From Fimbriosthenelais zetlandica (lineage: Eukaryota), in the NCBI GenBank assembly GCA_977030845.1, contig OZ365114.1, forward strand, positions 28,644,001 to 28,708,000: a stretch of DNA of 64,000 bases, read 5' to 3'. Positions 4,847 through 53,694 of the stretch are shown here, in pieces. The position numbers were made by a program, and so were the translations under genes. The notes under the pieces were generated by a model. It saw nothing but the letters and a program-made list of their open reading frames with translations, was not told where the DNA came from and did no database searches. The stretch's first letter is position 1. Each line of letters opens with the position of its first letter.

Positions 4847-7800
4847 CTGAAATTAAATTAAAATAGGCAAAATCGTGAGGCGAGCCATTAGATTAAATAT
4901 TTAGCCATCATTAGCATGTTAAACATATATAAAACATATCATCATATTTGAAAACGTAAATTAATGACCCATATGGAGAGAAAAGTAATTTTAATTGCAT
5001 GGAGGAATAACAACATATGAAACCAATGACATGGATTTAAGCCAAAGCAACATAAATTTAAACAAAAATTGGAAAATGCCGGTATTATCCTTAACCTTCG
5101 TATCCACTTTCGTTTTCATCTTCCCTTTTGGACTTCCGTTTGAGGAAGGACACAACAACGACCACAATAACGATGATCAAAACAAGCAAACCCAGAGATC
5201 CCCCGACCACGGCTGGCAGTATGGACGACTTCCAAGGATCTATAAAACAATATTATGTCACAATATTATCAGGCAATATCTGGAAATGTAATTATATCAG
5301 ATACTTGAGGATACTTGATGGGGTATATAGCAACAGTTTGTAGAGCAATTCACTGGTCTCTGTTGACAGTTGGTTGTTATGCCTAATATTTTTGAACTAT
5401 AGTCAATCATAATTTACAAGACAAAAATGACTCACCGAAAACCACAAATGTTTTTCTGAGCTCCTGCTCATCGTCAAACTCCGGCGTGATTTGACACAAA
5501 ATGTCCGCATAGTTCATTTCCTTCTTGGCACGTACAGTCTTCTTAATTTTATATTGGTATGTGCCGTCTGAATTTTGTATGGGATCCTCATCCATTTTGC
5601 TTGTTTCTCCGTTGAACATCAACAAGAATTTTGCCTGAGCGAACTTTGGATACACTCGACCGACAGAGCAAGTAATTACAACTTCTGTGTCCACTTGAAC
5701 TGCTAAATCAGGCGTGACTATCAGGTCGAGTTCAGATGTGGCTGGAATGGAGAAAAGTCAGTCGATAGTTTATCTGAACATCAGGTAGCTCAAAATATAT
5801 TTTTTTTAAATGAAAATCAATTCTGTAATTTACCAGTTCTTAAGTATAAAATTTATTTTGCTCAAAATATTTTTTTCGAGCAGGTCCATCATATTTGTTT
5901 TATAATCTCAAACAAAACTTGGGGACAGATTTTAAAATTCAGATGCTTGCAGAGTATATGCTTCCTGCATAAGTCATTGCACAAGGCAGGAATCGATTCT
6001 GTTCTGTTTAGAACCTTGTTATTTAATCATTTTAAATGTTATAAGCATTAAACATACATTAGATGAATGACTCACTGTAGACTATCAGGTTGATGTATTT
6101 AAATGTGTCACTAGCTGACAATAATTTACATGTAAACAGTGAATTATCCTCTATCTGTGATCGTCCTATAGTCAGACTGAAGGTGTCGCCATCCTCGTCA
6201 TCCATGTCCATGTCTTCCCGGGCGGCGGGTCCATGTGCACATACGGCAACACCCCTAATCTGACCAAACAGAGCGCCCTGCTTATTTTTAACAGTATGAT
6301 TAGCAAAGCCGCGATACCACCTTCGAGAAAAGTAATCCACTGTATCACAGTCCAGTGTCACTGGTTGGTGTTCTTTCACAGAGAAGCTTTCATCTGCAAG
6401 AGAGAAATATCAGACATATCAGACATGATGGGGTATCAGTGGCGGGGGGGCCTTGCCCCCTCCCCCTCCCCCCGGAGGAGGAAGGGAGAGAAGGGGAATA
6501 AAACAGAGAACGGAGAAGGGGAGGAAGGAGAGAAGAAAGGAGAGTAAAAGAAAGGAGGAAGGAAAAGAAGGTAACCAGCCTAGACTTGGCAGGCCCACCT
6601 TCGGGGGAGGTGCTTTAATGCCAGCCTTAGCCTTACGCTAGAGTACAGGTGACCATTTTTAAGCCAAACCTTCCCTGCATAATCCAATATGTAGGGGGAA
6701 CAGGCTATGGGTCAGATCAATTCGAGCCTACAAAAGTAAGGGCCCTAGGGATACACGTGTTAACAAAAATTTGCTATACATTACACCTAATAAACTTTAA
6801 GCTTCACAAGAAAATGTTAGTTCTAGCAATATCCATATATAACATATATAGACTGTCCTTCTTGTAAGTAATACAAAATTGTCTCGAAGTGATTTCGTAA
6901 TCAAGAGACCATTTTTACATGATGGCAATGTATGTTCCTACAAAAATGTAAAAAGAGAATTATTTAAAAAAAGGCAGTAATACAGCTTGCTATAACTGGA
7001 AAACTGTGTAAGATAATTGTAGACATGCCAGTTTGCCAGTTCACGGTGTTTTTACTCTGTGCCAGGGTTCTTGTAATATTAACATGCATCATCTTCGTAT
7101 AAGTTTTAGCATGGGACGGCTTACATGGTTGGGTTTAGATTCATGAGTCTAATAGAAAGGAACACGCGTTATTATTTGTGAGAGTCCCTTGCAGGACACT
7201 CGCTCTCTAAATATTAATGCATTGTGTCATAAGACACGACCGTATAGTTCTAATTTCAGGACTTTTGCTATATAATGACAAAATTTAAGGACTTTTCCAG
7301 GGCAACTCTTTTTCCAAGGATTCTCCAGGAGTGTGGAAACCCTGAAGAGTCATGAAGCCCAATGTCACATATTTAGTGGATTAGAATTTAATTCCATTCA
7401 TGTGCCAAAGTTAACAACAAAAAGAGGCAAGTCCGTCAATATATGTTGGTGCCTCAGAAGAAAACAAGTGTCTTAATTGTCTACAATTATCTTGCTTAAT
7501 ATCTGTGTCTCAGTCAAAGCTGCTATTTCATTGTATTGGTGAATTACTTCCTTTCTACATTTTTGGTAGAAACAAATATTGACATCTTATTGACCTCTAA
7601 AAAATTCCTGTGAGGCAACTTTTTATTAGTTCGAGACTCTATATGTAACTTAACTTTTTATTAGTTTAAAGCAGGATTTTATTAGTTTAAAGTAGTCTAC
7701 ATGCATATGGATATTGCTATGCTGCAAGAGTGTGACTTATAATTTATAAGTTATATTATAAGTAGATAAATCTCCACTGAGATTATTGATAGAAACAGAC

Positions 7801-10372
7801 TTTTTTTCCCAAAAATGTACCAAACACTACCTTCTATTTCAAAATGTATCAGACCCCCCTACCCCTAGAAACGCCTCACGTCTCCAGCACTTGTAGATGA
7901 GTGCCTTTCACGCTTCGCGCCTACGGCGCTCTTCTTGCCGTTCACAACATTGTTCATAATTTGGACCCCCCACCTTCAAAATCCTGGATCCGCCCCTGGG
8001 TATTGCAACAGTTTGTAGAGCAATTCACTGGTCTCTGTTGACAGTATGTTGTTATGCCTATAATATTGTTGAACTATAGTCAATCATAATTTACAAGACA
8101 AAAATGACTCACCGAAAACCACAAATGTTTTTCTGAGCTCCTGCTCATCATCAAACTCCGGCGTGATTTGACACAAAATGTCCGCATAGTTCATTTCCTT
8201 CTTGGCACGTACAGTCTTCTTAATTTTATATTGGTATGTGCCGTCCGAATTTTTTATGGGATCCTTATACATTTTGCTTGTTTCTCCGTTGAACATCAAC
8301 AAGAATTTTGTCTGAGCGAACTTTGGATACACTCGATTGACAGAACAAGTAATTACAACTTCTGTGTCCACTTGAACTGCTAAATCAGGCGTGACTCTCA
8401 GGTCGAGTTCAGATGTGGCTGGAATGGAGAAAAGTCAGTCGATAGTTTATCTGAACATCAGGTAGCTCAAAATATATTTTTTTTAAATGAAAATCATTTC
8501 TGTAATTTACCAGTTCTTAAGTATAAAATTTATTTTGCTCAAAATGTTTTTTTCGAGCAGGTCCATCATACTTGTTTTATAATCTCAAACAGAACTTGGG
8601 GACAGATTTTAAAATTCAGATGCTTGCAGAGTATATGCTTCCTGCATAAGTCATAGCACAAGGCAGGAATCGATTCTGTTCTGTTTAGAACCTTGTTATT
8701 TAATCATTTTAAATGTTATAAGATTTAAACATACATTAGGTGAATGACTCACTGTAGACTATCAGGTTGATGTATTTAAATGTGTCACTAGCTGACAATA
8801 ATTTACATGTAAACAGTGAATTATCCTCTATCTGTGATCGTCCTATAGTCAGACTGAAGGTGTCGCCATCCTCGTCATCCATGTCCATGTCTTCCCGGGC
8901 GGCGGGTCCATGTGCACATACGGCAACACCCCTAATCTGACCAAACAGAGCGCCCTGCTCATTTTTAACAGTATGATTAGCAAAGCCGCGATACCACCTT
9001 CGAGAAAAGTAATCCACTGTATCACAGTCCAGTGTCACTGGTTGGTGTTCTTTCACAGAGAAGCTTTCATCTGCAAGAGAGAAATATCAGACATTAGTTT
9101 ATCAGATTAAGAAGATGTGGTAATGGTACTAGTGACCGGACTCTTGAAAACTAAGCCCATAGATTTTGGAAGCAACATTATAGCATACTAAAACGTCCAA
9201 AAGTCAAATTTTAGTTTGCCATTCTAGTGAATTGGGGGTCGGAGTGAGGGATGGATAACCCTGAGGTGGAAGCCATCAGGTGCCCCTCCCATTCACTCGT
9301 GGAACATACCATCATGCACCAATACCACTTCTCAGTCAGTTCTATCTATACATGTAGTATTTCCCTCATACCCCAGTAAGTCTAAGAGGTAACTTTCTTA
9401 AAAAGAAATTAAAAGAATATAATAAATTTTAATCAACATATATATATTATATATATGATGATTCATGTGAATGTCTGGATGTGTACCACACCTCAACTAC
9501 TAAATCATACATCCATATACTGGTTCGCACATGAAATAAAGGCAATTGTTGAATATGTATCACTTGATACATTGAAACTATTAAGTCATTTTCAGTCAAA
9601 GAAATCAATATGACTGGGTTACACTCCATATATTTCACTGAATTCTGAATAACTCAAAAGCAATAAAATATAGCTTACTTTTGGTGGTTTTACCAAATCC
9701 GGCTCCAAAATCTGAAGCGATATGCATGGGCACCCACTTTGTCATACCTACCTTCACTATTTTATGAATCTGTGGCCCAGAAACATGCTTTTTAAATCAG
9801 AAATGAAAGATGTATAATTGGTAAAAAAAATTATATTTCATAAATGAACAATGAATGGGAACTTTTAATGTTCTGAGATTTCCCAGAACATCAAATATAG
9901 CCACAATATATTACCATCTGAGATGGCTATAAACATAACCGTCCATGACGGCAATAACCGTCCATGACGGTAGTTTTAATGAATAGAAAATGGGTTTTCA
10001 TTTAGAATAAATTTTAAGGTAAGAGCAGTACCTGTAAAAGGGGCTTATGAAAGTATGAAAAGACAACTGACATTTCCTGGAATTATTAAACAGATTTATG
10101 TAGGACTGTCACGAACCGTTATGGACTGTTATTTTGAGCTGCTCTATCTTTGTAAATTATTATAGATAAGCTGCCCGGCTATAGATTTGAAAACACATGC
10201 ATATATATATTTAACAGTAAAAAGGGCGATGTTGAAAGAACAAATTTATATTTTACCCATCTCGAGGGTCAAGTGTAACCCAGTCGTGAGAACCATACTC
10301 ACCCGCATCCAAAGAATAGGCAGATGGGATTGACAGGATTTGTAAGAGGAGAATAACCATGAACGTGTCCAT
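4596..10372 (-). CDS. Ig-superfamily type I membrane receptor, SP-V-C1like-V-C1like-TM-ITAM-like tail; 7 exons, 1713 nt, ~570 aa
   Basis: Manually spliced exons 10303-10372, 8753-9070, 8113-8418, 6076-6393, 5436-5741, 5096-5239, 4596-4846. All introns are GT-AG and phase 1, the joined frame is open from ATG to TAG, and the domain order is coherent. Confidence 0.9.
5096..5239 (-). CDS. Ig receptor exon 6: transmembrane helix and juxtamembrane segment
   Basis: TTTTATAG acceptor, G|GTTAAG donor, 144 nt. DPWKSS-ILPAVVGGSLGLLVLIIVIVVVVVSFL-KRKSKR-EDENESGYE, i.e. a hydrophobic helix followed by a basic stop-transfer cluster. Not in the ORF track. Confidence 0.9.
5436..5741 (-). CDS. Ig receptor exon 5: C1-like Ig domain (copy A)
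   Basis: ITCSVGRVYP...PIQNSDGTYQY...ILC; GT-AG, phase 1-1, 306 nt. Confidence 0.9.
6076..6393 (-). CDS. Ig receptor exon 4: V-type Ig domain (copy A)
   Basis: Same splice sites as 8753-9070 and differs from it by 1 nt (K/E). Confidence 0.9.
6437..7998. mobile_element. 1562-bp non-autonomous DNA transposon-like insertion
   Basis: Termini CAGTGGCGG / CCGCCCCTG (inverted); GGTAT directly flanks both ends (6432-6436 and 7999-8003); the empty site is visible at 5317-5330. Confidence 0.65.
8113..8418 (-). CDS. Ig receptor exon 3: C1-like Ig domain (copy B)
   Basis: TTCCAG acceptor, G|GTGAG donor, 306 nt. ITCSVNRVYP...PIKNSDGTYQY...ILC with 57 residues between the Cys. Confidence 0.9.
8753..9070 (-). 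CDS. Ig receptor exon 2: V-type Ig domain (copy B)
   Basis: TTGCAG acceptor, A|GTGAG donor, 318 nt. VTLDC...RWY...FSLTI...EDNSLFTC with 72 residues between the canonical Cys. Confidence 0.9.
10303..10372 (-). CDS. Ig receptor exon 1: signal peptide MDTFMVILLLQILSIPSAYSLDA
   Basis: ATG at 10372, hydrophobic core VILLLQILSI, AYS-L cleavage-like motif, donor G|GTGAGT in phase 1 matching the V-exon acceptor. Confidence 0.85.
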
Positions 10373-11399
10373 GTTGATGTTACATCCATGAAGAAATTCT
10401 CGATCGTGACCAAACTTTGCTTCACTTCCGTGGGTGTATTTTTATAATCGATGCATATACAACTTTGTTCTAAACTTCTCAATTTCGCGATTCGACAATT
10501 TCCTAATTTTTAAATTCGCATTGTGACCTAGCATTCGAGTGTTTTAAACGACCTTAATTAATACAAACGCGGTATATAACTGTTTTCCAGTAGATAACCA
10601 ACGATGGTTATAAGTACTATTATTGAGAAATAAGATAATATAAGATCCTTGAGTTCCTCGTTGGATAAATTGGCGTTCTTTCCGGATATAACATGTTTTG
10701 CTACTATATAGAGAGGTGACCTTTCTGTAATTATTCTCACAGATAACAGAGATAGTGCAAGTATGGAGCAAACATGGCGATGATCAGTTACACATAATAA
10801 ACTGTCTAACGCAGTGACAGGGATTTATGGAAGAAGATGTAAACCTATTGCAAATAAATAACATATCCGTATACATGTGCACCCACTTCCAAGACGTACG
10901 TGCATGCGCACACTACTTTTTCCTATTTCTTGGCGCTACACGTTTGGTACAATCTCTTTCTTCCACAAATAACGGTTTTGTCAAGTTTCTTTTTTCTTTA
11001 ATGGAAATTAACTTCACTTGGGAACTTGGGCCTCACTCATTTCACAGTTACGTGACACCTCACCCAGTCACCCTATCTTGAAACCAGGCAAACCAGTTCT
11101 AGTACTGTCCTCTTACTGCTGAGTGTATTAGTATTAGTTTTAATTTTGAAGTCTGAACTGGCGACCTTCCACAGACAGACAGAAAACTGCGGTTCCTGAC
11201 TTTAGACTAGGTGGCGAAGGCTGCTGTGTGGATGAGATCTCCTAATGGAGGTTCCTAATCTACACACCAGGTGGCGAATGGTGGCGAGGGAGTGGCTTCC
11301 ATGCAGTAGGAGAGAGAGAGTGAGATGGAGAGAGAGAGTAGTTCCACTGGTCAGTGGGAAACAGTAGTTGTAGGAGGAGAGACAGAGAGAGGAGAGAAC

Positions 11400-11453: not shown

Positions 11454-12353
11454 GTAAGTGGAAATCCATCTTAAACTATTTCACCTTTGTCCGTTTTGTG
11501 CATCCCTGAAAAATTATCGAAAATACTTATTATAGATTTCACAAGTATTTTCATATTTTGGGGTATTGTATATGTGGTTCTAGCAGATTATAGTACATGT
11601 CCATTACATTGAACACCCTTTTCTCGGTCCTTGAAGTGTTCAATTATATTTTTATTGGTTTCAAAGGCCGTTATTATGGACTAGGGTCTTCTCAATCAAG
11701 TTGCGCCTACTTGGGAGAAAAAGTATGCCTACAGTTGAGGTAGATTTCATATTATAGTAATGACGACTCCAAATGTTATGCGATCATTGCCAATTGTCAA
11801 CTGCCACGCATTATTATGGAGAATTCAGTTGTTATATCATGTTTATTTCGGGTGTGGGTCCTAAAGCTTGAGTGCCCAATCAACATTGGGAAGCGCTAGG
11901 TTTAAATATAGGCATATGGACTGCAATTAACAGCAATGCATGGCTAGATATGGACCAAACGATAAGTATGATGTTTAGCCGCACCACAACCTGCCCAACA
12001 CTGGTTTGAAATAACAACAAATGAGATTTACGGAAAGCATAACAGAACCAATGATTTAAGCCTAAATGATATAAACTTGACAAAAGAAAGAAGATGCACC
12101 AAATTTAACTGACGCGCACAGTGCCGCTAAAGATGAGACATTTTGGGCTGTGATAGTTTTTTTAGTTTTTTTTTTTAGAATTTTTATAGAGCCTGTTATG
12201 GGTGAAGACCAGCTCACACTCTTGATTACTCAAGTTTCTCGTATGATTTTCAGCTGGGGGCTCTTTCTAAGTGCATTACTACATTGCCTTCTGCGCAATG
12301 GATATTTCTAGGTGCAAGTGCTTTAGACATATGTACACCAACGCTCACCCTGT

Positions 12354-12857
12354 CACTGTACCTAGACCTACCAGTGTAATTCGAATTACCCGAAACCAAA
12401 ATGGCGGATGGTGATTTCCATTCATTTTATTTCATTGAATTGTGACAGAATGAAAGGGAGTTAGAACATGCAGGTTAGATGAGTCTTTTCTTTTAGTGAT
12501 GAAGATGATTACCAAGCACATAAATAACGCCAGTCCTGTCTATTTTCTGCAATATTCGACTATGTTTTTTGTTTGGTATCGTGGTAATTCTATTTGTGTA
12601 CATACAATCGACCCAAATAGAATTACCACGATACCATAGCAAAGAACAAAGTCGGATTTGGCAGAATGTAGACAAGATTGGCTTTATTCATATGCTAGGT
12701 ATTCATCTTCATCACTAAAAGAAAAGACTCACCTAACCTGCATGTTCTAACTCTCTTTAATTGTGTCACAATTCAATGAAATAAAATGAATGGTAATCAC
12801 CATCCGCCATTTTGGTTTCGGGTAATTCGAATTACACTGGTAGGTCTAGGTACAGTG
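12354..12857. mobile_element. 504-bp palindromic MITE with CAC termini and 5-bp TSD (Transib/RAG-like signature)
   Basis: Arms of ~244 bp are inverted copies with the first 63 nt identical (CACTGTACCTAGACCTACC...); CCTGT flanks both sides (12349-12353 and 12858-12862). Confidence 0.85.
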
Positions 12858-15800
12858 CCTGTGTGAGCTGGCGCTCTAACAAACTGAGCTAACTCCCCTC
12901 CTTTCAAAGATGAATTCACTTTTACTCATAACGAACGACAGCTTGTCGTTTTGATAAACCTGAAACAATGCTTCATTAGATGTGAAAGAAATATTCAGAT
13001 TTGTATCATTTTTTGACTCATTTCTGGTCTCTGTTATGTGCCTTTCTCTTACCTTCTTCCACTTTTAAATTCTGAATTCCATTCCACTATCCTCGTTTCA
13101 AGATTGTGTCACCTCTACATCTCCCTCTCTCCTCCCTCTCTCCTCCCACTCTCCTTCCCTTCAGCCCATTTCACCCTGGACACTCTGACTATCTATGGTT
13201 TATGATGTTAACATTGATCTAGTCACCCTGTCGCGCCTTGCTGTGCACCCCAACCACCTCGGAATAAAGCCGGTATATAAGTTTGGTGTCTTTAAAATCC
13301 CAACCTTTTCAAGGATTTTACCTTGTTCTTATAAAATAAAAACCCACGTCACCTTCCCCCACGCACGCCCCCAGAAGCAGGGTATGTGGACACTGTATAA
13401 GGTTGGGGGCGGGGGGGGGGGGAGCGGTGGGGTGAGAACACAAAAAAAGGAAATTTCAAAATGGCTAGCACACCCATCACCCTCCCACCTTATACCCTTC
13501 CGCCCACCACCCTTCCTCTCTCTCCTATACTACCCTCCGTTCCCGCCACCCGCCCACCTTTCTCTTCCACCCACCACCTCCCCCGCCTACTACACCCACC
13601 CCCACACCCACAAGCACCCCCACAACCTACCACCCCCACAACCTACCACCAGTGACACGTGTCAGATATGACGTCAGACGCTGTGATTTAGGTGTGGGAC
13701 CAGGATATTGACATAAACTGGTTCCACAACTTGCCTGAGGCTAGGGTTCTTTATAAGATCAGAATTATCCTAAACGTTCACAGAGGGAGAGCGAGGGAAG
13801 GGGTTGGGGGAGAGTGGGAGTGGAAAGAAGGGAGTGTAGCAACATGTACAAAGACTTTTCCTTGAATCAGACTCTCCCTAATTGAAGAGTTCGAGTGGAT
13901 TTAACAAGTGAAACTGCACGAGCAGGGCTTGTAATTTCCGTGGGATGCCTATTTTATGCTATATGGCAGTTGAGGCCATGGAAACGTCAGCCACAAGGGC
14001 AAAAGCTCAAACGAACCACAAGGTCTAGTCGCAACAAAATCGCAACACTCACGAGGCAAGAGAACTGCGTAGAGTTACAACTTTAAGCGATTTATTTAAA
14101 GTTTAAAGTTGAGAGTTTGGGCTGAGTTTTATTTTTCAGTCAGACCATGTGGGGTGGTGGGAGGCAGTGTGGGTCTGGTGTCTGCTGGAGCTGGGGTGTT
14201 AGCTGATATGGCTGATCAGGCTCAGTTTACATCTCCCCACATGATCTCCATACAAATTCACAAACAATTTACTCCAATATTGACTCAAATTTTCTGGCTA
14301 AACTTAACGATAAAGAGTTCACAGATACAGTTTGCTAAGATAATTGGACATCCAATGAACCGTGATTGCATTTTGTTTTTGTCTCTCGCCTGTCCTTTCT
14401 CTTCATTTTTCTTCCTTATTTCAGATCTATCTGCTTTTCTGTCCCTTTCTATCTGTTCGGCTTTTTCCTATCGACATTTTCATTAAATTGACTTGCCTAT
14501 TAAAAACATTCTTATTCAAGGTAGCCCCCATTGTCATTGGTGTGACAGTGTTTTTGCAATAACTTTGCAAAGCAATAAAAGTTATTGACAAAGGCCTGAA
14601 TATCCTACTGCGCTGATGACATTTATCCCTGCTGAAAAGTAGTGTTTTTGGAATAAATCTAATCCTTGTTAAACATGTCAAAGTCATGAAAGCTCTCCTG
14701 GATCCACTGGTGAAATTTTTCCTGTGAAGCAAGTCTCACAAATACAATCACAGTAGTGGAAAACAACCTTTAAATACCCAAGAACAGCATTGCTTAGAAA
14801 CGTTTTCCAACCCGTGTATTAGCCCAGCCCACTTTAATGTCTACTCCTTTACACATATCCATACCTAACTCTTGGTCAATCTCTCTCAGTTACTTTCTTC
14901 TCTCTTTCTCTGAAAGTTCTGTGTGTGCTGACTTGTGCTCTCCTGTTCAATACTCAACCTTTCATTTCCTCCTCTCCACCTCTCGTCATTTCCACGAGAT
15001 TCACCCTAGATCTCCCTTATATTTACCCTTTTCACCCTTCACCCCCTCTACCAAAGTCGAACCCTCTTATAGTGCTACACTTCCAAGAAGCAAGTCCAGT
15101 ATTTTTGTATTCAACATATTTTTACAGAACTAATCAAGGTTATATGTTCACGGGGCATTTGACTGTACCATGATCTTCCACATATCGCTGTGTCCAGTTA
15201 CAATATGAGAGGGTAAGGTGAGGGATGGTAGGTCGATGGTATCAGAGGATTTCAAGGATATGATTCGGGTAAAAAAATTGTCCATACATATCTAGTACCC
15301 AGAGATTCCTGTTCAGTGGCACGGTCTCCGCCACTGGTCCTTGTAGATCACAGAGGGCTCTATTCCAAACCATCAACCTTTGGATTTCTTTTCATGATGA
15401 TTAAAAAACTTCTGCTTCGTCCCCGAGCGTGGACAATATTGGATTTTCCACCGTATTTGCCGCAATTTTAATTACACTAGCAGGGGGATGCTATTTATGA
15501 GGGGTGCCTTTATTATGCTCCAAATACGGGGGTGACATTTGGGGATTGATATTAAATCAGTTAAATGTTAAAAAAGCATGTTTCTTAACTTTCGTAATAC
15601 ATTATTTAACTAGTTGTATTTATTGTCTCAGTCACATCAGGCCATCAGTTTTTGTTCTGGATTTGTTCACCAAATGGTGATTAAACAATTAAGCAACTAA
15701 TTGACAAATTTAATAACTATCAGAACGTTTTCATTTTAGCTAAACGAATATTTAATGGCAAGAATTAGGAAAATCCAATCTTTGAATTCATTTGCCGAGC

Positions 15801-22575: not shown

Positions 22576-24396
22576 GGAGGTTCTTCCTATGAGGAGATAG
22601 ATTATCACTTATACGAGGCAGCCCTGCCTCCCTGGTTCTTATCCTGTCGAATCTTATATAAATCCTTATAAAAGCCCATTCATGTTCTAATATGGAATGA
22701 AAAAGTGGACTCTAGCTGGGAAATTCACACAGGCAGCTTTCAAAACCTGATGTCATAATTATAGAAAATATCACAATAATATATAAAAAAAGGCCTATAT
22801 CTATTTAGGAAGGGTGGAACTCTGAGGCCTGCAATATACAATGAAGCTGGTATATCATGCATGATTTTTGTCTTAACAGATTATTTCTTGCTGAGAAATC
22901 TTTGTGGAATTCTCCACTTTATAACAGAAATTCGTTTCTAACGGCCTCTGGAGGGACCGACCCTGAAGGTTGCGACTTGGGGGGTTAGGTGTATGCTTTC
23001 AGATTCTAAGGAGCTCGTACATGCATGCATGTGATTACCAAAATATTACGCTACCAATTATTCCATCAATGGACATGAGAACAAAAGTCATTGACCTTGC
23101 TGATTGCCTGTGCTAATCAAGGCTGAATATATGACAATAACATGTATTGTTCTAGCCTCCTGTATTGTACATGCCCATTACTGGTCATTGTATTGCTCGC
23201 TTTGTATTGCATCTATCGACCTCCATGAATGAATGGGTCGTGTATATCCAGCTGTGGTTTCTTTTCTGTCAATAGGAGAGTTGTATAAGCCAAGAGTACT
23301 TGTGAATCGTCATTAGCAAGTGAACAGATTGAATGCCGGATAATAACAGATGTTTGCTTGGGAAACAGTTCCGACATTGCTCGCAGGTTTATGCAATGCC
23401 CTTTCAGTAATATGATAAGTAGTTTTTAGAGGCAATTTGGAAAAATATGCGTAGTAGATTGACTTTTGAGAGAAAAAGAGATGGGGATTGGGAGGGAGAG
23501 GGAAAGAGATTGAGAGAGGCTAAGGAGAGAGTGAGAAAGAGAGATAGAGGGAGAGAGGGAGAAAAAGAAAGGGAAACATAGAGCGTGAGAGATAGTGAGA
23601 AAGAGATGGGCGAGAGAGAGAGAGAGAGAGAGAAAGCGAAAAAGAGATTAAGAAAGAGGAAGAGGTAAGAGAGAGACGGAGGCAGAGAGACAGCGAGTGA
23701 GAGAAACGGAGACGGAGATAGCGAGAGAGAAAGAGGCATCCTCGCCTTCCCCATCGTCCACTCTCATCATCTGTTCTGATGCAGACCTTGCTCTAGTGAA
23801 TCCAGACTGTAGTTTAAGCTGCACTATCTCACCCAGGTCTCTCTTAAAACCGAAGTATCTCATTTAGACTGGCAAATAAAACCAGATTAAAATGAGTCCC
23901 AGCCTGGGACCTTTCCACCTCCGCATCTGAAACAGTCATGTCACCCACGTTGGTTTCAAGTGCCCCCTTGGTCACAAATAAAGCCCATTTCCAGGCACAC
24001 TGGTTAAATATAGTACCTCATTTTATCCCCTTATATTTTTTCCCCATTCCTCATTCCAAGTGCCTTGGCGCGACCTTCCAGATTCCTGACCTTAATTTTA
24101 CCTCAAGGTCAAACCACCTAGCGGTGACCTTCGGAGGCAGGGGCGACTGGGAAAGGTCAGAGTCGTGATTCGTTAAAGGTTTTGATATAGGACCTATAAA
24201 AGTTACCCATGATAGGGCACTGGAAAAGGCGGATGTGAGGGATATGTGAAATGCTCAAGTCTGATTGGAAGTTGGAAGGTATGACATCAAAGGCCCTTGA
24301 CTCATTCTCATCTTGCTGACTCTGTCACTGACTCATGCAAGTGTCCTTAGCGAAATGCTAGTTTTGCTATTAAAGTGCAACCTATATGGACTTAGG

Positions 24397-24846
24397 TTAG
24401 TAGGTGAGAGCACCAGCTCATTCAGGGTGTTAGCTCAGTGGGTGAGAGCACCAGCTCATTCAGGGAGTTAGCTCAGTGGGTGAGAGTACCAGCTCATTCA
24501 GGGAGTTAGCTCAGTAGGTGAGAGTACCAGCTCATTCAGGGTGTTAGCTCAGTGGGTGAGAGCACCAGCTCATTCAGGGTGTTAGCTCAGTGGGTGAGAG
24601 CACCAGCTCATTCAGGGTGTTAGCTCAGTGGGTGAGAGCACCAGCTCATTCAGGGAGTTAGCAGCTCAGTAGGTGAGAGCACCAGCTCATTCAGGGAGTG
24701 AGCTCAGTAGGTGAGAGCACCAGCTCATTCAGGGTGTGAGCTCAGTAGGTGAGAGCACCAGCTCATTCAGGGAGTTAGCTCAGTAGGTGAGAGCACCAAC
24801 TCATTCAGGGAGTTAGCTCAGTTAGGTGAGACCACCAGCTCATTCA
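24397..24846 (+). repeat. 38-bp tandem array (~12 units) resembling a tRNA 5' half / Pol III A-box
   Basis: Unit GAGAGCACCAGCTCATTCAGGGWGTTAGCTCAGTRGGT. Confidence 0.95.
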
Positions 24847-25323
24847 TATGGTACATTATGATAAGACCATTTCCGAATCCGTCTGAACTGCCTGGGTGCA
24901 TAAGAAATCGTAACTATATTTGCGAATCGAATAGACTCCAGTGGATCAATGCTTTCCCCTTAGGTGTCATTTAAATGTTAAGGTGTGAACGCTACTGAAT
25001 GTGGCAGCCAACCTCAAAACTGTTAGTGGTCTCCAGATTGCCTCCAAATTCTACTAAAAGGTCAAATTGCTTTTTACCACATTAGACTGGTCGGGGGACC
25101 ATTTCATGAAAGGAAGCATGTACTATATTAATCAATGTTAACTGCATGACTATGTACAGTCGGGGATATTTCTATTGAAACAGCCCCCAGGTATTAATTG
25201 CTCCGGCAGCTTTTTGATTTGTCTGATTTGTGAATGGACATGATTCATAGGATCAGCTACAGCACATTAGTGGTGATCAGAAGTACTCACTTAGAGTAGT
25301 TTCCACTGGTAAGGCGCTCTGTC

Positions 25324-26057
25324 AGGTAGAGCACAGCTCATTCAGAGAGTGAGTAGGTGAGAGCACCAGCTCATTCAGAGTGTTAGCTCAGTAGGTGAGA
25401 GCACAGCTCATTCAGGGAGTGAGCTCAGTAGGTGAGAGCACCAGCTCATTCAGGGAGTTAGCTCAGTAGGTGAGAGCACCAGCTCATTCAGGGAGTTAGC
25501 TCAGTAGGTGAGAGCACCAGCTCATTCAGGGATTTAGCTCAGTAGGTGAGAGCACCAGCTCATTCAGGGTGTGAGCTCAGTAGGTGAGAGCACCAGCTCA
25601 TTCAGGGAGTTAGCTCAGTAGGTGAGAGCACCAGCTCATTCAGGGATTTAGCTCAGTAGGTGAGAGCACCAGCTCATTCAGGGTGTGAGCTCAGTAGGTG
25701 AGAGCACCAGCTCATTCAGGGTGTGAGCTCAGTAGGTGAGAGCACCAGCTCATTCAGGGTGTTAGCTCAGTAGGTGAGAGCACCAGCTCATTCAGGGATT
25801 TAGCTCAGTAGGTGAGAGCACCAGCTCATTCAGGGTGTTAGTAGGAAAGAGCATCAGCTCATTCAAGTAGTTAGCTCAGTAAGTGCGAGCATTAGCTCAT
25901 TCAGGGTGTTAGCTCAGTATATTAGAGCTCCAGCTCATTCAGGGTGTTAGCTCAGTATAGGTAAGAGCACCAGCTCATTCAAGTAGTAAGCTCAGTAGTT
26001 GAGAGCACCAGCTCATTCAGGGAGTTAGCTCAGTAGATTAGAGCACCAGTTAATTCA
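25324..26057 (+). repeat. Second 38-bp tandem array (~19-20 units)
   Basis: Same unit as 24397-24846, degenerate at both ends, separated from it by ~475 bp of unique DNA. Confidence 0.95.
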
Positions 26058-39418: not shown

Positions 39419-39559
39419 NNNNNNNNNNNNNNNNNNNNNNNNNNNNNNNNNNNNNNNNNNNNNNNNNNNNNNNNNNNNNNNNNNNNNNNNNNNNNNNNNN
39501 NNNNNNNNNNNNNNNNNNNNNNNNNNNNNNNNNNNNNNNNNNNNNNNNNNNNNNNNNNN
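39419..39559. other. Assembly gap (141 N)
   Basis: Run of N inside a GA-rich tract. Confidence 1.
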
Positions 39560-50509: not shown

Positions 50510-52735
50510 GCGCAACATGCAAGAATCACAAGGTAATGATCCAAAGAGAGTACCAGGGCATTTAAGATATCCATTGCATTTATATGACCACATCCTCCAA
50601 TATTTCCCCACAAATAAATGGGCTGGGGTTACAGATGCCAGTCACCTACATGGACTGGGGTACATGGGGGTCCACATTTGATGCACTTGCAGTCCATGGT
50701 CTTGTAGACAAGCTCCACTTTTAAGAATCACTGCAAGAATCACCAGGCAATGATCCCTGGTAGGTATCCTATTAATGTACCAGGTCATTTGAAACATCCA
50801 CTAGGTATTCATGACTTGCAATTCTTGCAAAGTTTCATACCCTTATTGTCCAAGGCCTTTCCACAAAGAAAGGGGCTGGGGTTACAGATACCAGTTACCT
50901 ACATGGACTGAGTGCATGGGGTCCACATTCTGTCGAGGGAGTTGTCAATTGCTGAATGTTGCCTTCCTAATCTGGTAACATATGATTTTCTAACAGCATT
51001 TGATGCACATACAGTTCATGGTCTTGTAGACAAGCTGCACTTGCAAGAATCACTGCAAGAATCACCAGGCAATGATCCCTGGTAGGTATCCTATTAATGT
51101 ACCAGGTCATTTGAAACATCCACTAGGTATTCATGACTTGCAATTCTTGCAAAGTTTCATACCCTTATTGTCCAAGGCCTTTCCACAAAGAAAGGGGCTG
51201 GGGTTACAGATACCAGTTACCTACATGGACTGAGTGCATGGGGTCCACATTCTGTCGAGGGAGTTGTCAATTGCTGAATGTTGCCTTCCTAATCTGGTAA
51301 CATATGATTTTCTAACAGCATTTGATGCACATACAGTTCATGGTCTTGTAGACAAGCTGCACTTGCAAGAATCACTGCAAGAATCACCAGGCAATGATCC
51401 CTGGTATGCTCCCAATCAGTATACTAGATTATTAGATATATCTACTAGAAATACATGATTTGCAATTCTTGCGAAGTTTCATACCCTTGTCCCCCAATGT
51501 CTCCCAACAAAGGAAGGGGTTGGGTTACAGATACCAGTCACCTACATGGACTGGGTTGCATGCGGGTCCACATTCTGCTAAGGGAGATGCCAATTGCTTG
51601 CTTTGTCTTGCAATTCTGGCAACATATCATTTTCAAGCATCCATTGATGCACTTTGACTTGACGGGCTTGTAGACAAGCTTCACATGCAAGAATCACTGC
51701 AAGAATCACCAGGCAATGATCCCTGGTAGGTATCCAATTAATGTACCAGGTCATTTGAAATATCCACTAGATATTCATGACTTGCAATTCTTGCAAAGTT
51801 TCATAACCATTTTATCCAATGCCTTTCCACATAGGAAGGGGCTGGGGTTACAGATACCAGTCACCTACATGGACTGAGTGCATGGGGTCCACATTCTGTC
51901 GAGGGAGTTGTCAATTGCTGAATGTTGCCTTCCTAATCTGGTAACATATGATTTTCTAACAGCATTTGATGCACATACAGTTAATGGTCTTGTAGACAAG
52001 CTACACTTGCAAGAATCACTGCAAGAATCACCAGGCAATGATCCCTGGTATGCTCCCAATCAGTATACTAGATTATTAGATATATCTACTAGAAATACAT
52101 GATTTGCAATTCTTGCGAAGTTTCATACCCATGTCCCCCAATGTCTCCCAACAAAGGAAGGGGCTGGGGTTACAGATGCCAGTCACTTATATGGACTGGG
52201 ATGCTGGTTTTGCCAGATTCAATTGCGATTCTGGCAACATATCATTTTCTAGCATCCATTGATGCACTGTCACTTGAAGGGCTTGTAGACAAGCTCCACA
52301 TGCAAGAATCACTGCAAGAATCACCAGGCAATGACCCCTGGTAGGTATTCTATTAATGTACCAGGTCATTTGAAAAATCCACTAGATATTCATGACTTGC
52401 AATTCTTGCAAAGTTTCATAACCATGTTATCCAATGACGCTGTTCACAGGAGGGTGGTGGGTAACAGATGTCTAGTGATGTACATGGACTGGGAGTGCAG
52501 TAAAGGGCGAGGAATATATCTCCTTTGCTGACACTTGCCTTCTGATTCTCACAGCATATCATTTTATGACAGCAATTGATGCACTTGCAGTTCATGGTCT
52601 TATAGACAAGCTCCACTTGTGAGAATCACTGCAAGAATCACAAGGCAGTGATGCCTGATAGGCATCCAGTAATTGTACCAAGTCATTTGAGATATTCATT
52701 AGATATACATGACTTGCAATTTCTGCAAAGTTTAA
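50510..52735 (+). repeat. 322-bp satellite, ~7 units
   Basis: TTGATGCAC anchor at 50678, 51000, 51322, 51644, 51966, 52259 and 52576. The period is not a multiple of 3, so it is non-coding. Confidence 0.95.
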
Positions 52736-53694
52736 TTCAACATCACGCATTCAGCATACAAATCCCTATCTCTAAAAATTCAAAAGAAATATTGTGATTC
52801 GTTCAGTTTTCATTGACCTCTCATTTGCCCCTTTAGATTAATTTATACCAAACACCCTTATCACTGATCTCAAGTCAATTCAGTTTGCCCTCTTAATGAG
52901 GCATTTTTCATTAGTCTATGACTTGGAGTGATAACTAATTAATTCTTAATTATGCTTAATGGTAATTAACTGTGGCAGGGGCGGACAGGGGGTAATTGGA
53001 GCCATCAAATTAGGTCATCGTTTAATTAAGTCACAAAAGGGAGTTACAGATAGTAGCCTGGAAGTTGAGATTTTGACTGGGACAATAGAGGAACTCCAGA
53101 CTGATCTTCTTTTGCAATTTTGTTGCGGTATACAATAAGGTCTAGTTGTTTTTGATGCGACGTTGGAAGGCGCCAAGCGATGGTCCGCTATTTTGGACGT
53201 ATATCGCTGCGCATCTGTGACGTAGGCTACATTCATATACAATGGCAGCTTCTTGTGAGCCAACTGCTATTATTTCTAACTTTGTAAGCCATGGTATTTG
53301 GATGTAGCTTTGGAAAAGACTCGTAAGTGGAAATCCCTAGTTGCGCCATTGTCCTTAATGCTGTGATGCAATGTTTTGCTCAATGTTTGGTGTAGCTATG
53401 AATTACAAGCTTGGAACCAGCTGCTATGATTTACTTAGGATTTACTTTCTCAAAGTTAACGATTTCCATTAGTGTGTTTTGTTGACATTGTCAGCTATAG
53501 TAAATCTAGAGTACCTTTATTGTTCATAATTAATGGAGTACTTGTCATTGTGTCAATAGCCAGGTGTGTGGAGGGGGATTAATAACTTCAGGTTCTATGT
53601 ATTTACATATTGATTCTCTTAATTACAGTGTGTCCGGTGGTTGAGTGTTCCACGTCAATGTACAAAGTGCCAGGTTCTCTATATTTTAATAGTC

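Follow-up and report, generated by a model that had tools for sequence, protein, structure and literature searches.

A probable constant-type, C1-like immunoglobulin domain in a predicted type I receptor of the spiralian Fimbriosthenelais zetlandica

C1-set immunoglobulin (Ig) domains serve as modules of antibodies, T-cell receptors and MHC molecules. The set has long been held to be confined to jawed vertebrates, and its members can be recognized by three features of their sequence: the BC loop opens with (F/Y)(F/Y/H)P, the F-strand Cys is followed by xVxH, and exactly 13 residues separate the B-strand Cys from the C-strand Trp (PMC2785349). In the d3 domain of the SIRP proteins, strand C' is long and strand D is short (PMC2785349). 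In 2025 a tandem of EV-set and C1-set domains was described in the sponge SAML/RTK proteins, and according to its authors the C1-set had not been reported outside vertebrates before (PMC11926128). Here we analyse a 64,000-nucleotide stretch of the F. zetlandica genome (assembly GCA_977030845.1, contig OZ365114.1, positions 28,644,001 to 28,708,000), called the window hereafter and numbered from its first letter. It contains a receptor gene whose fifth exon, at 5436-5741 on the minus strand, had been described in an earlier note, made from the sequence alone, as coding for a C1-like Ig domain. The genome itself bears the marks of a spiralian invertebrate. Ten TGA codons are read through in its mitochondrial COX1, where AGR and ATA stand at conserved Ser and Met positions; this is the invertebrate mitochondrial code (TGA=Trp, AGR=Ser, ATA=Met), which vertebrates, tunicates, echinoderms and cnidarians do not use. 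An intronless HSP70 gene has its nearest named proteins, at 76-78% identity, in nemerteans, a brachiopod, molluscs and the annelid Owenia, a result that goes no further than Spiralia. We propose, with a probability of roughly two in three, that this exon encodes a genuine constant-type C1-like Ig domain of a spiralian type I receptor and that this domain is related to the vertebrate C1-set but has diverged from it.

Exon 5 is bordered on the minus strand by an acceptor AG at 5743-5742 and a donor GT at 5435-5434, is in phase 1 at both ends and corresponds to an Ig domain of 102 codons. Its translation contains, in this order, ...VVITCSVGRVYPKFAQAKFLLMFNGE...PIQNSDGTYQYKI...ADILCQITPE.... The signature reported in the earlier note is indeed there: CSVxxVYP takes the form CSVGRVYP, PIQNSDGTYQ is found as such, and Cys24 and Cys82 (numbering of the translation of window positions 5437-5739, minus strand) enclose 57 residues, as had been counted. 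The Trp of strand C, said to be missing, is absent from the exon. Phe38, the last residue of 'AKF', stands at the canonical Cys+14 position, a Leu lies at Cys+16, and the Trp of paralogues falls opposite Phe42 in the alignment. Strand F reads NYADILC.

Two copies of this C domain exist in the window, encoded by exon 5 and by its tandem copy exon 3. Among the Ig models of Pfam, C1-set (PF07654) gives the best score on both, 22.1 bits (E 1.9e-4) and 23.8 bits (E 5.6e-5) respectively, above the gathering cut-off of 21 bits. The C2-set_2 model (PF08205), with the same cut-off of 21 bits, remains below it with 13.6 and 12.4 bits, and ICAM D2 reaches about 14 bits. I-set (PF07679) gives no match up to E 10, and strand F lacks the DxGxYxC motif. 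The contest between the three models, which the earlier note had suggested as a check, is thus won by C1-set in both copies. On the other hand, the raw C1-set score is insufficient, since two plain I-set exons of the same genome also reach 23-26 bits on this model, yet 40-100 bits on I-set; what counts is the ranking among Ig models. The ranking bears directly on the idea that exon 5 is an I-set or classical C2-set domain misread as C1-like. True I-set exons of this genome behave otherwise, and both the span between the cysteines (57 residues) and that from strand C to strand E (18 residues) exceed what a C2 domain has. We consider this misreading very improbable. The C-domain family as a whole is nevertheless borderline for C1-set, since paralogues score 16.1 and 18.5 bits, and P0003, an exon open reading frame from another assembly, gives no match, all below the cut-off.

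Searches against known proteins point in the same direction. An exhaustive phmmer query of 1.84 billion proteins with the C domain returned eight matches in all. Every animal match with a source name comes from a jawed vertebrate (Latimeria, two frogs and Polypterus SHPS1/SIRP), and the three vertebrate matches that were scanned all carry C1-set domains; identity to vertebrate proteins is 25-30%. The top match (E 1e-12), a bacterial protein with 13 Big_2 repeats (P0001), was rejected: its score is the sum of six stretches, repeated and individually weak, near DGTY, and this similarity is probably a generic beta-sandwich likeness. We also compared a profile built from five family members with all PDB sequences. 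The best match was the d3 domain of human SIRP-alpha (E 3e-12), aligned over 94 of 100 positions, and the next was that of SIRP-gamma (E 3.6e-11), SIRP d3 standing about 25 bits above every other match. They are followed by partial matches to CD276, then by Ig light-chain constant (CL) and Fc domains (E 0.01-0.3), the only others to span the greater part of the domain. In the reverse search, the C1 domain of bichir SIRP finds only five places in the genome (447 Mb, 79 contigs), namely the two window copies, the C exon of the paralogue L003 and the loci L007 and L008 described below. Given the Pfam E-values, the PDB profile match at E 3e-12 and the vertebrate phmmer matches, the resemblance to C1 domains goes far beyond chance. 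According to the profile, d3 of SIRP-alpha and SIRP-gamma appears to be the nearest solved structure to the exon 5 domain, and the C1-like character advanced in the earlier note is supported by this match together with the Pfam ranking.

Alternatively, exon 5 could encode an ordinary invertebrate constant domain of the CD80-like or nectin-D2 type. Such domains belong to the C2-set_2 class, whose D-strand topology is common with C1, and the C1 likeness described above would then be generic. The C2-set_2 scores, 8-11 bits under those of C1-set, argue against it, as does the profile search, where no nectin, CADM or PVR domain was listed among the best 60 PDB matches. Structure prediction gives a more divided answer. 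An AlphaFold2 model of the C domain, built on the five-sequence alignment, has a predicted local distance difference test (pLDDT) score of 91.6. DSSP assigns strands A (5-9), B (19-29), C (38-42), a short strand (45-47), E (61-70), F (78-84) and G (92-98), with a bridge at 54-55; an NG turn precedes the short strand, and a helical turn joins E to F. A C1 fold is a seven-strand ABED/CFG sandwich in which strand D pairs with E, strand A is straight and C'' is absent. As modelled, the layout of the C domain, in which C' and D are both short, would be compatible with the long C' and short D strands of SIRP d3. Foldseek, with its 3Di+AA alphabet, lists mostly C1 proteins: the best 50 PDB matches are for the most part MHC II alpha2/beta2, beta-2-microglobulin and SIRP, at E values of only about 1e-3, and in AFDB/Swiss-Prot SIRP-alpha d3 of four mammals comes on top. 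In the ESM Atlas searched by shape, SIRP occupies the first row (TM-score 0.80) and tapasin reaches 0.77.

Several observations weigh against our proposal. The same shape search gives 0.84 for fasciclin-3 and 0.78 for CADM1, and the language-model neighbours of the C domain are C2-set_2 clusters of molluscs, arthropods and flatworms. Because the fold and language-model searches are mixed in this way, C1 and the C1-like nectin-D2/CD80 class are inseparable by shape alone. The sequence marks of C1 domains are also incompletely retained. At the start of the BC loop, the window copies have V-Y-P and P0003 has L-Y-P; the Tyr and the Pro are invariant in all five family members, while the first position is aliphatic. 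After the F-strand Cys, xVxH is replaced by C-Q-I-T-P, where a Pro, again invariant in the five members, takes the place of the His. Nor is the spacing of 13 residues between Cys and Trp found: the window copies have no Trp, only Phe38 and, at Cys+18, Phe42, and in the relatives that possess a Trp the intervening residues number 15 (L004) or 17 (P0003 and L020).

Three residues that are invariant in the family, Y30 and P31 (BC loop) and P86 (strand F, Cys+4), nonetheless fall on the two hallmark positions named in PMC2785349. Because they occupy these positions, the BC/FG packing may have been kept with different residues. Since several hallmarks are absent, we call the domain C1-like rather than textbook C1: it is nearest to vertebrate C1 by sequence, compatible with it by fold, and non-canonical. 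Our claim is limited to the same extent, as the shape is indistinguishable from that of nectin-D2-type domains, which are known in invertebrates. Weighing these points with the Pfam, PDB profile and Foldseek results, we hold an ordinary C2-set_2-type domain to be unlikely, while taking it seriously, and retain the C1-like assignment.

The domain belongs to a small family in this genome and has relatives beyond it. The paralogue L003, on another contig, shares 45% identity and consists of signal peptide, V, C and transmembrane (TM) exons. L004 and L020, also on another contig, are about 27% identical; they have a V-C-V-C organization with diverged modules, and their Trp is present. Regular-expression scans for immunoreceptor tyrosine-based activation motifs (ITAMs) in the paralogue loci gave just low-complexity noise. 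P0003 truly belongs to the family and has kept the Trp of strand C; it is the C domain of L005, a locus of a distant species (ENA ERZ25767047 contig, 9045-11165) with the same V-C-V exon order. The receptor family is thus not private to this genome. No annotated protein of the family was found among the 1.84 billion representatives.

A six-frame scan of the genome with the C1-set model revealed at least 13 further exons above the cut-off, two of which are I-set. Ten others, L007 (43 bits), L008 (35 bits) and eight on contig C13, have a more canonical appearance, as all ten display exactly 13 residues between Cys and Trp together with Cx[VM]x[HY]. A profile of this group matches IgG Fc, IgA, SIRP d3 and shark UrIg with E values from 1e-12 to 1e-21. 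L007, outside the window (G000:C38:9437100-9437309; L021 9044-9346), carries CQVMH. Its AlphaFold2 model has a pLDDT of 88.9 and a clear D strand, and Foldseek, at E about 1e-5, relates it to IgG Fc, MHC, beta-2-microglobulin and SIRP. The gene of which it forms domain 2 is of the adhesion type and comprises V, C, four Ig and two FN3 domains. In an alignment of profiles by hhalign, the window family and the canonical-looking group are related with a probability of 95.8% (E 6.6e-9). Since hhalign links the two, the window domain appears as a divergent branch of the C1-like class that this invertebrate clearly possesses.

The exons on contig C13 (L009, L011-L014 and L016-L018; 33.5-37.7 Mb) lie outside the window too. 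At least eight related exons are present, most of them at 36.9-37.7 Mb, with VTCVVxxVKPKNVTFTW and CxVTHGLD motifs, the 13-residue spacing, an extra Cys pair and 22-28 bits on C1-set. They are a lineage-specific expansion.

As read from the genomic sequence, seven exons of the window can be joined into a single open frame, 570 residues long, in which every internal boundary is AG/GT in phase 1 (Table 1). They encode, in order, a signal peptide, V, C, V and C domains, a TM segment and a tail. Because of this gene order, the exon 5 domain would lie next to the membrane in the predicted type I receptor. Charged residues are absent from the TM segment. By its pattern YEHL-x6-YEDL, the cytoplasmic tail would be ITAM-like, with a predicted signalling function. 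The V domains are less informative. Their profile finds weak and generic V/I matches in the PDB (T-cell receptor V-alpha, light-chain variable (VL) domains and titin), and this search showed no SIRP-specific or antigen-receptor-specific link. Neither for the 5.9-kb gene nor for the V+C stretch of 1 kb was any public sequencing run listed.

Table 1. Exons of the receptor gene and its internal duplication (window coordinates)
Feature	Position	Strand	Remarks
Exon 1: start codon and signal peptide	10303..10372	-	ATG then hydrophobic leader; GT donor, phase 1
Exon 2: V-type Ig domain, module 1	8753..9070	-	AG/GT; one codon unlike exon 4
Exon 3: C1-like Ig domain, module 1, tandem copy	8113..8418	-	94% protein identity to exon 5; Pfam C1-set 23.8 bits
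Exon 4: V-type Ig domain, module 2	6076..6393	-	Pfam V-set 19.6 bits (below cut-off of 26); 72 residues between Cys
Exon 5: C1-like Ig domain, membrane-proximal, module 2	5436..5741	-	AG/GT, phase 1/1; Pfam C1-set 22.1 bits; AlphaFold2 pLDDT 91.6
Exon 6: TM segment of 27 hydrophobic residues, then basic stop-transfer stretch	5096..5239	-	Read from sequence; homologous TM exon after the C exon in paralogue L003
Exon 7: cytoplasmic tail with ITAM-pattern YEHL-x6-YEDL, stop codon	4596..4846	-	Motif read from translation
Downstream copy of the 1.1-kb V+C tandem duplication	5321..6417		blastn against partner 7998-9094

The two V+C modules derive from a tandem duplication. By blastn, 5321-6417 and 7998-9094 share 97.6% DNA identity over 1099 columns, with an offset of 2677 bp. 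Such a degree of identity is also what a haplotype duplication in an assembly can yield, and the locus might in principle be an artefact, whether a falsely duplicated segment, vertebrate contamination or the product of horizontal transfer. A unique spacer of 1.58 kb separates the copies, however, and both fit into one in-frame gene. The gene has its own introns, and its protein shows just 25-30% identity to vertebrate proteins. Moreover, the paralogues described above lie on another contig (L003 at 45%, L004/L020 at 27%), and the architecture recurs, as V-C-V in the distant species and as V-C-V-C in L004/L020. We therefore regard an artefact as hardly credible and keep to a genuine spiralian gene.

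Divergence since this recent duplication is about ten times greater in the C exons than in the V exons, with 10 base changes against one. The C exons (5436-5741 and 8113-8418) differ by 10 nucleotides, with six non-synonymous and three synonymous codon changes, and the V exons (6076-6393 and 8753-9070) by a single base. Three of the six amino-acid changes, D50Y, E51K and Q55K, are in the C-D loop region. This contrast may reflect gene conversion or purifying selection on the V exons, or else relaxed or positive selection on the C exons.

From the architecture one can imagine how such a receptor would work. The C domain would most likely act as a rigid stalk holding the ligand-binding V domains off the membrane. 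Engagement of the V domains would be passed on to the tyrosine motifs of the tail, presumably by ITAM signalling. The C domains could possibly also pair side by side via the ABED face, as is usual for C1 domains. The receptor might have an immune function.

Other features of the window lie apart from the gene. About 2 kb upstream of it, at 12343-12868, is a 527-bp palindrome with 89% identity to its own reverse complement. Repeats occur at 24274-25956, at 50637-52834 and, scattered, over 21731-61385; they comprise large tandem arrays, with 38-bp units in two blocks and 322-bp units in about seven copies, and a dispersed repeat with a 44-bp unit at six sites. An assembly gap of 141 N lies at 39419-39559.

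A receptor with V and C1-like domains and an ITAM-like tail provides a concrete, testable object on the origin of the V-C1 receptor core. If the spiralian receptors of this kind, and likewise the more canonical C1-like exons, had a common ancestor with the V-C1 core found in the SIRPs and antigen receptors of vertebrates, then both the C1 domain and the design of V-C1 signalling receptors would be older than vertebrates and would have been present in the bilaterian ancestor. For the moment we view this common descent as a speculative and rather improbable scenario. In full-text literature searches of an incomplete collection, no paper describing a V-C1-like ITAM receptor of a spiralian turned up, and a literature search found none treating C1-set, invertebrates and SIRP together.

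How does this locus stand with respect to the described systems? From domain 2 of nectin/CADM/CD80-type proteins (C2-set_2), the window copies are set apart by their 12-14 bits on the corresponding model and by the best 60 profile matches, which include no such domain. The sponge SAML/RTK proteins offer a parallel, since there also a V-type domain is followed by a domain of C1 topology in a non-vertebrate. They belong to another phylum and another protein family, and are known from crystal structures, whereas a predicted model is used here (PMC11926128). The sponge entry was not present among the best 50 VIA-align rows.

The closest likeness is with d3 of SIRP-alpha and SIRP-gamma (PDB 2wng, 4i2x). 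VTCxVxx(F/V)YP and N(K/S)DGTY are common to both, and in both proteins the domain is a membrane-proximal constant domain beneath a V domain. In contrast, SIRP d3 has FYP, a Cys-Trp spacing of exactly 13 residues and, at Cys+4, a His, while the window domain has VYP, no Trp and a Pro at Cys+4. The proteins differ further as a whole: SIRPs are organized as V-C1-C1 and the window receptor as V-C-V-C, with V domains that are not specifically SIRP-like. SIRPs also possess either a tail with immunoreceptor tyrosine-based inhibition motifs (ITIMs) or a TM lysine binding DAP12, and the window receptor an ITAM-like tail and an uncharged TM segment. Because the architecture, the generic V domain and the activating-type tail differ, the window receptor is not a member of the SIRP family.

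Compared with the canonical C1-set, as represented by Ig CL/CH, MHC II alpha2/beta2, beta-2-microglobulin and tapasin, the window domain departs from the His and 13-residue marks, and its host is a protostome-type invertebrate. It nevertheless shares with them the B-F disulfide, the NG turn after strand C, the DGTY that opens strand E and, in its model, the helical turn between strands E and F.
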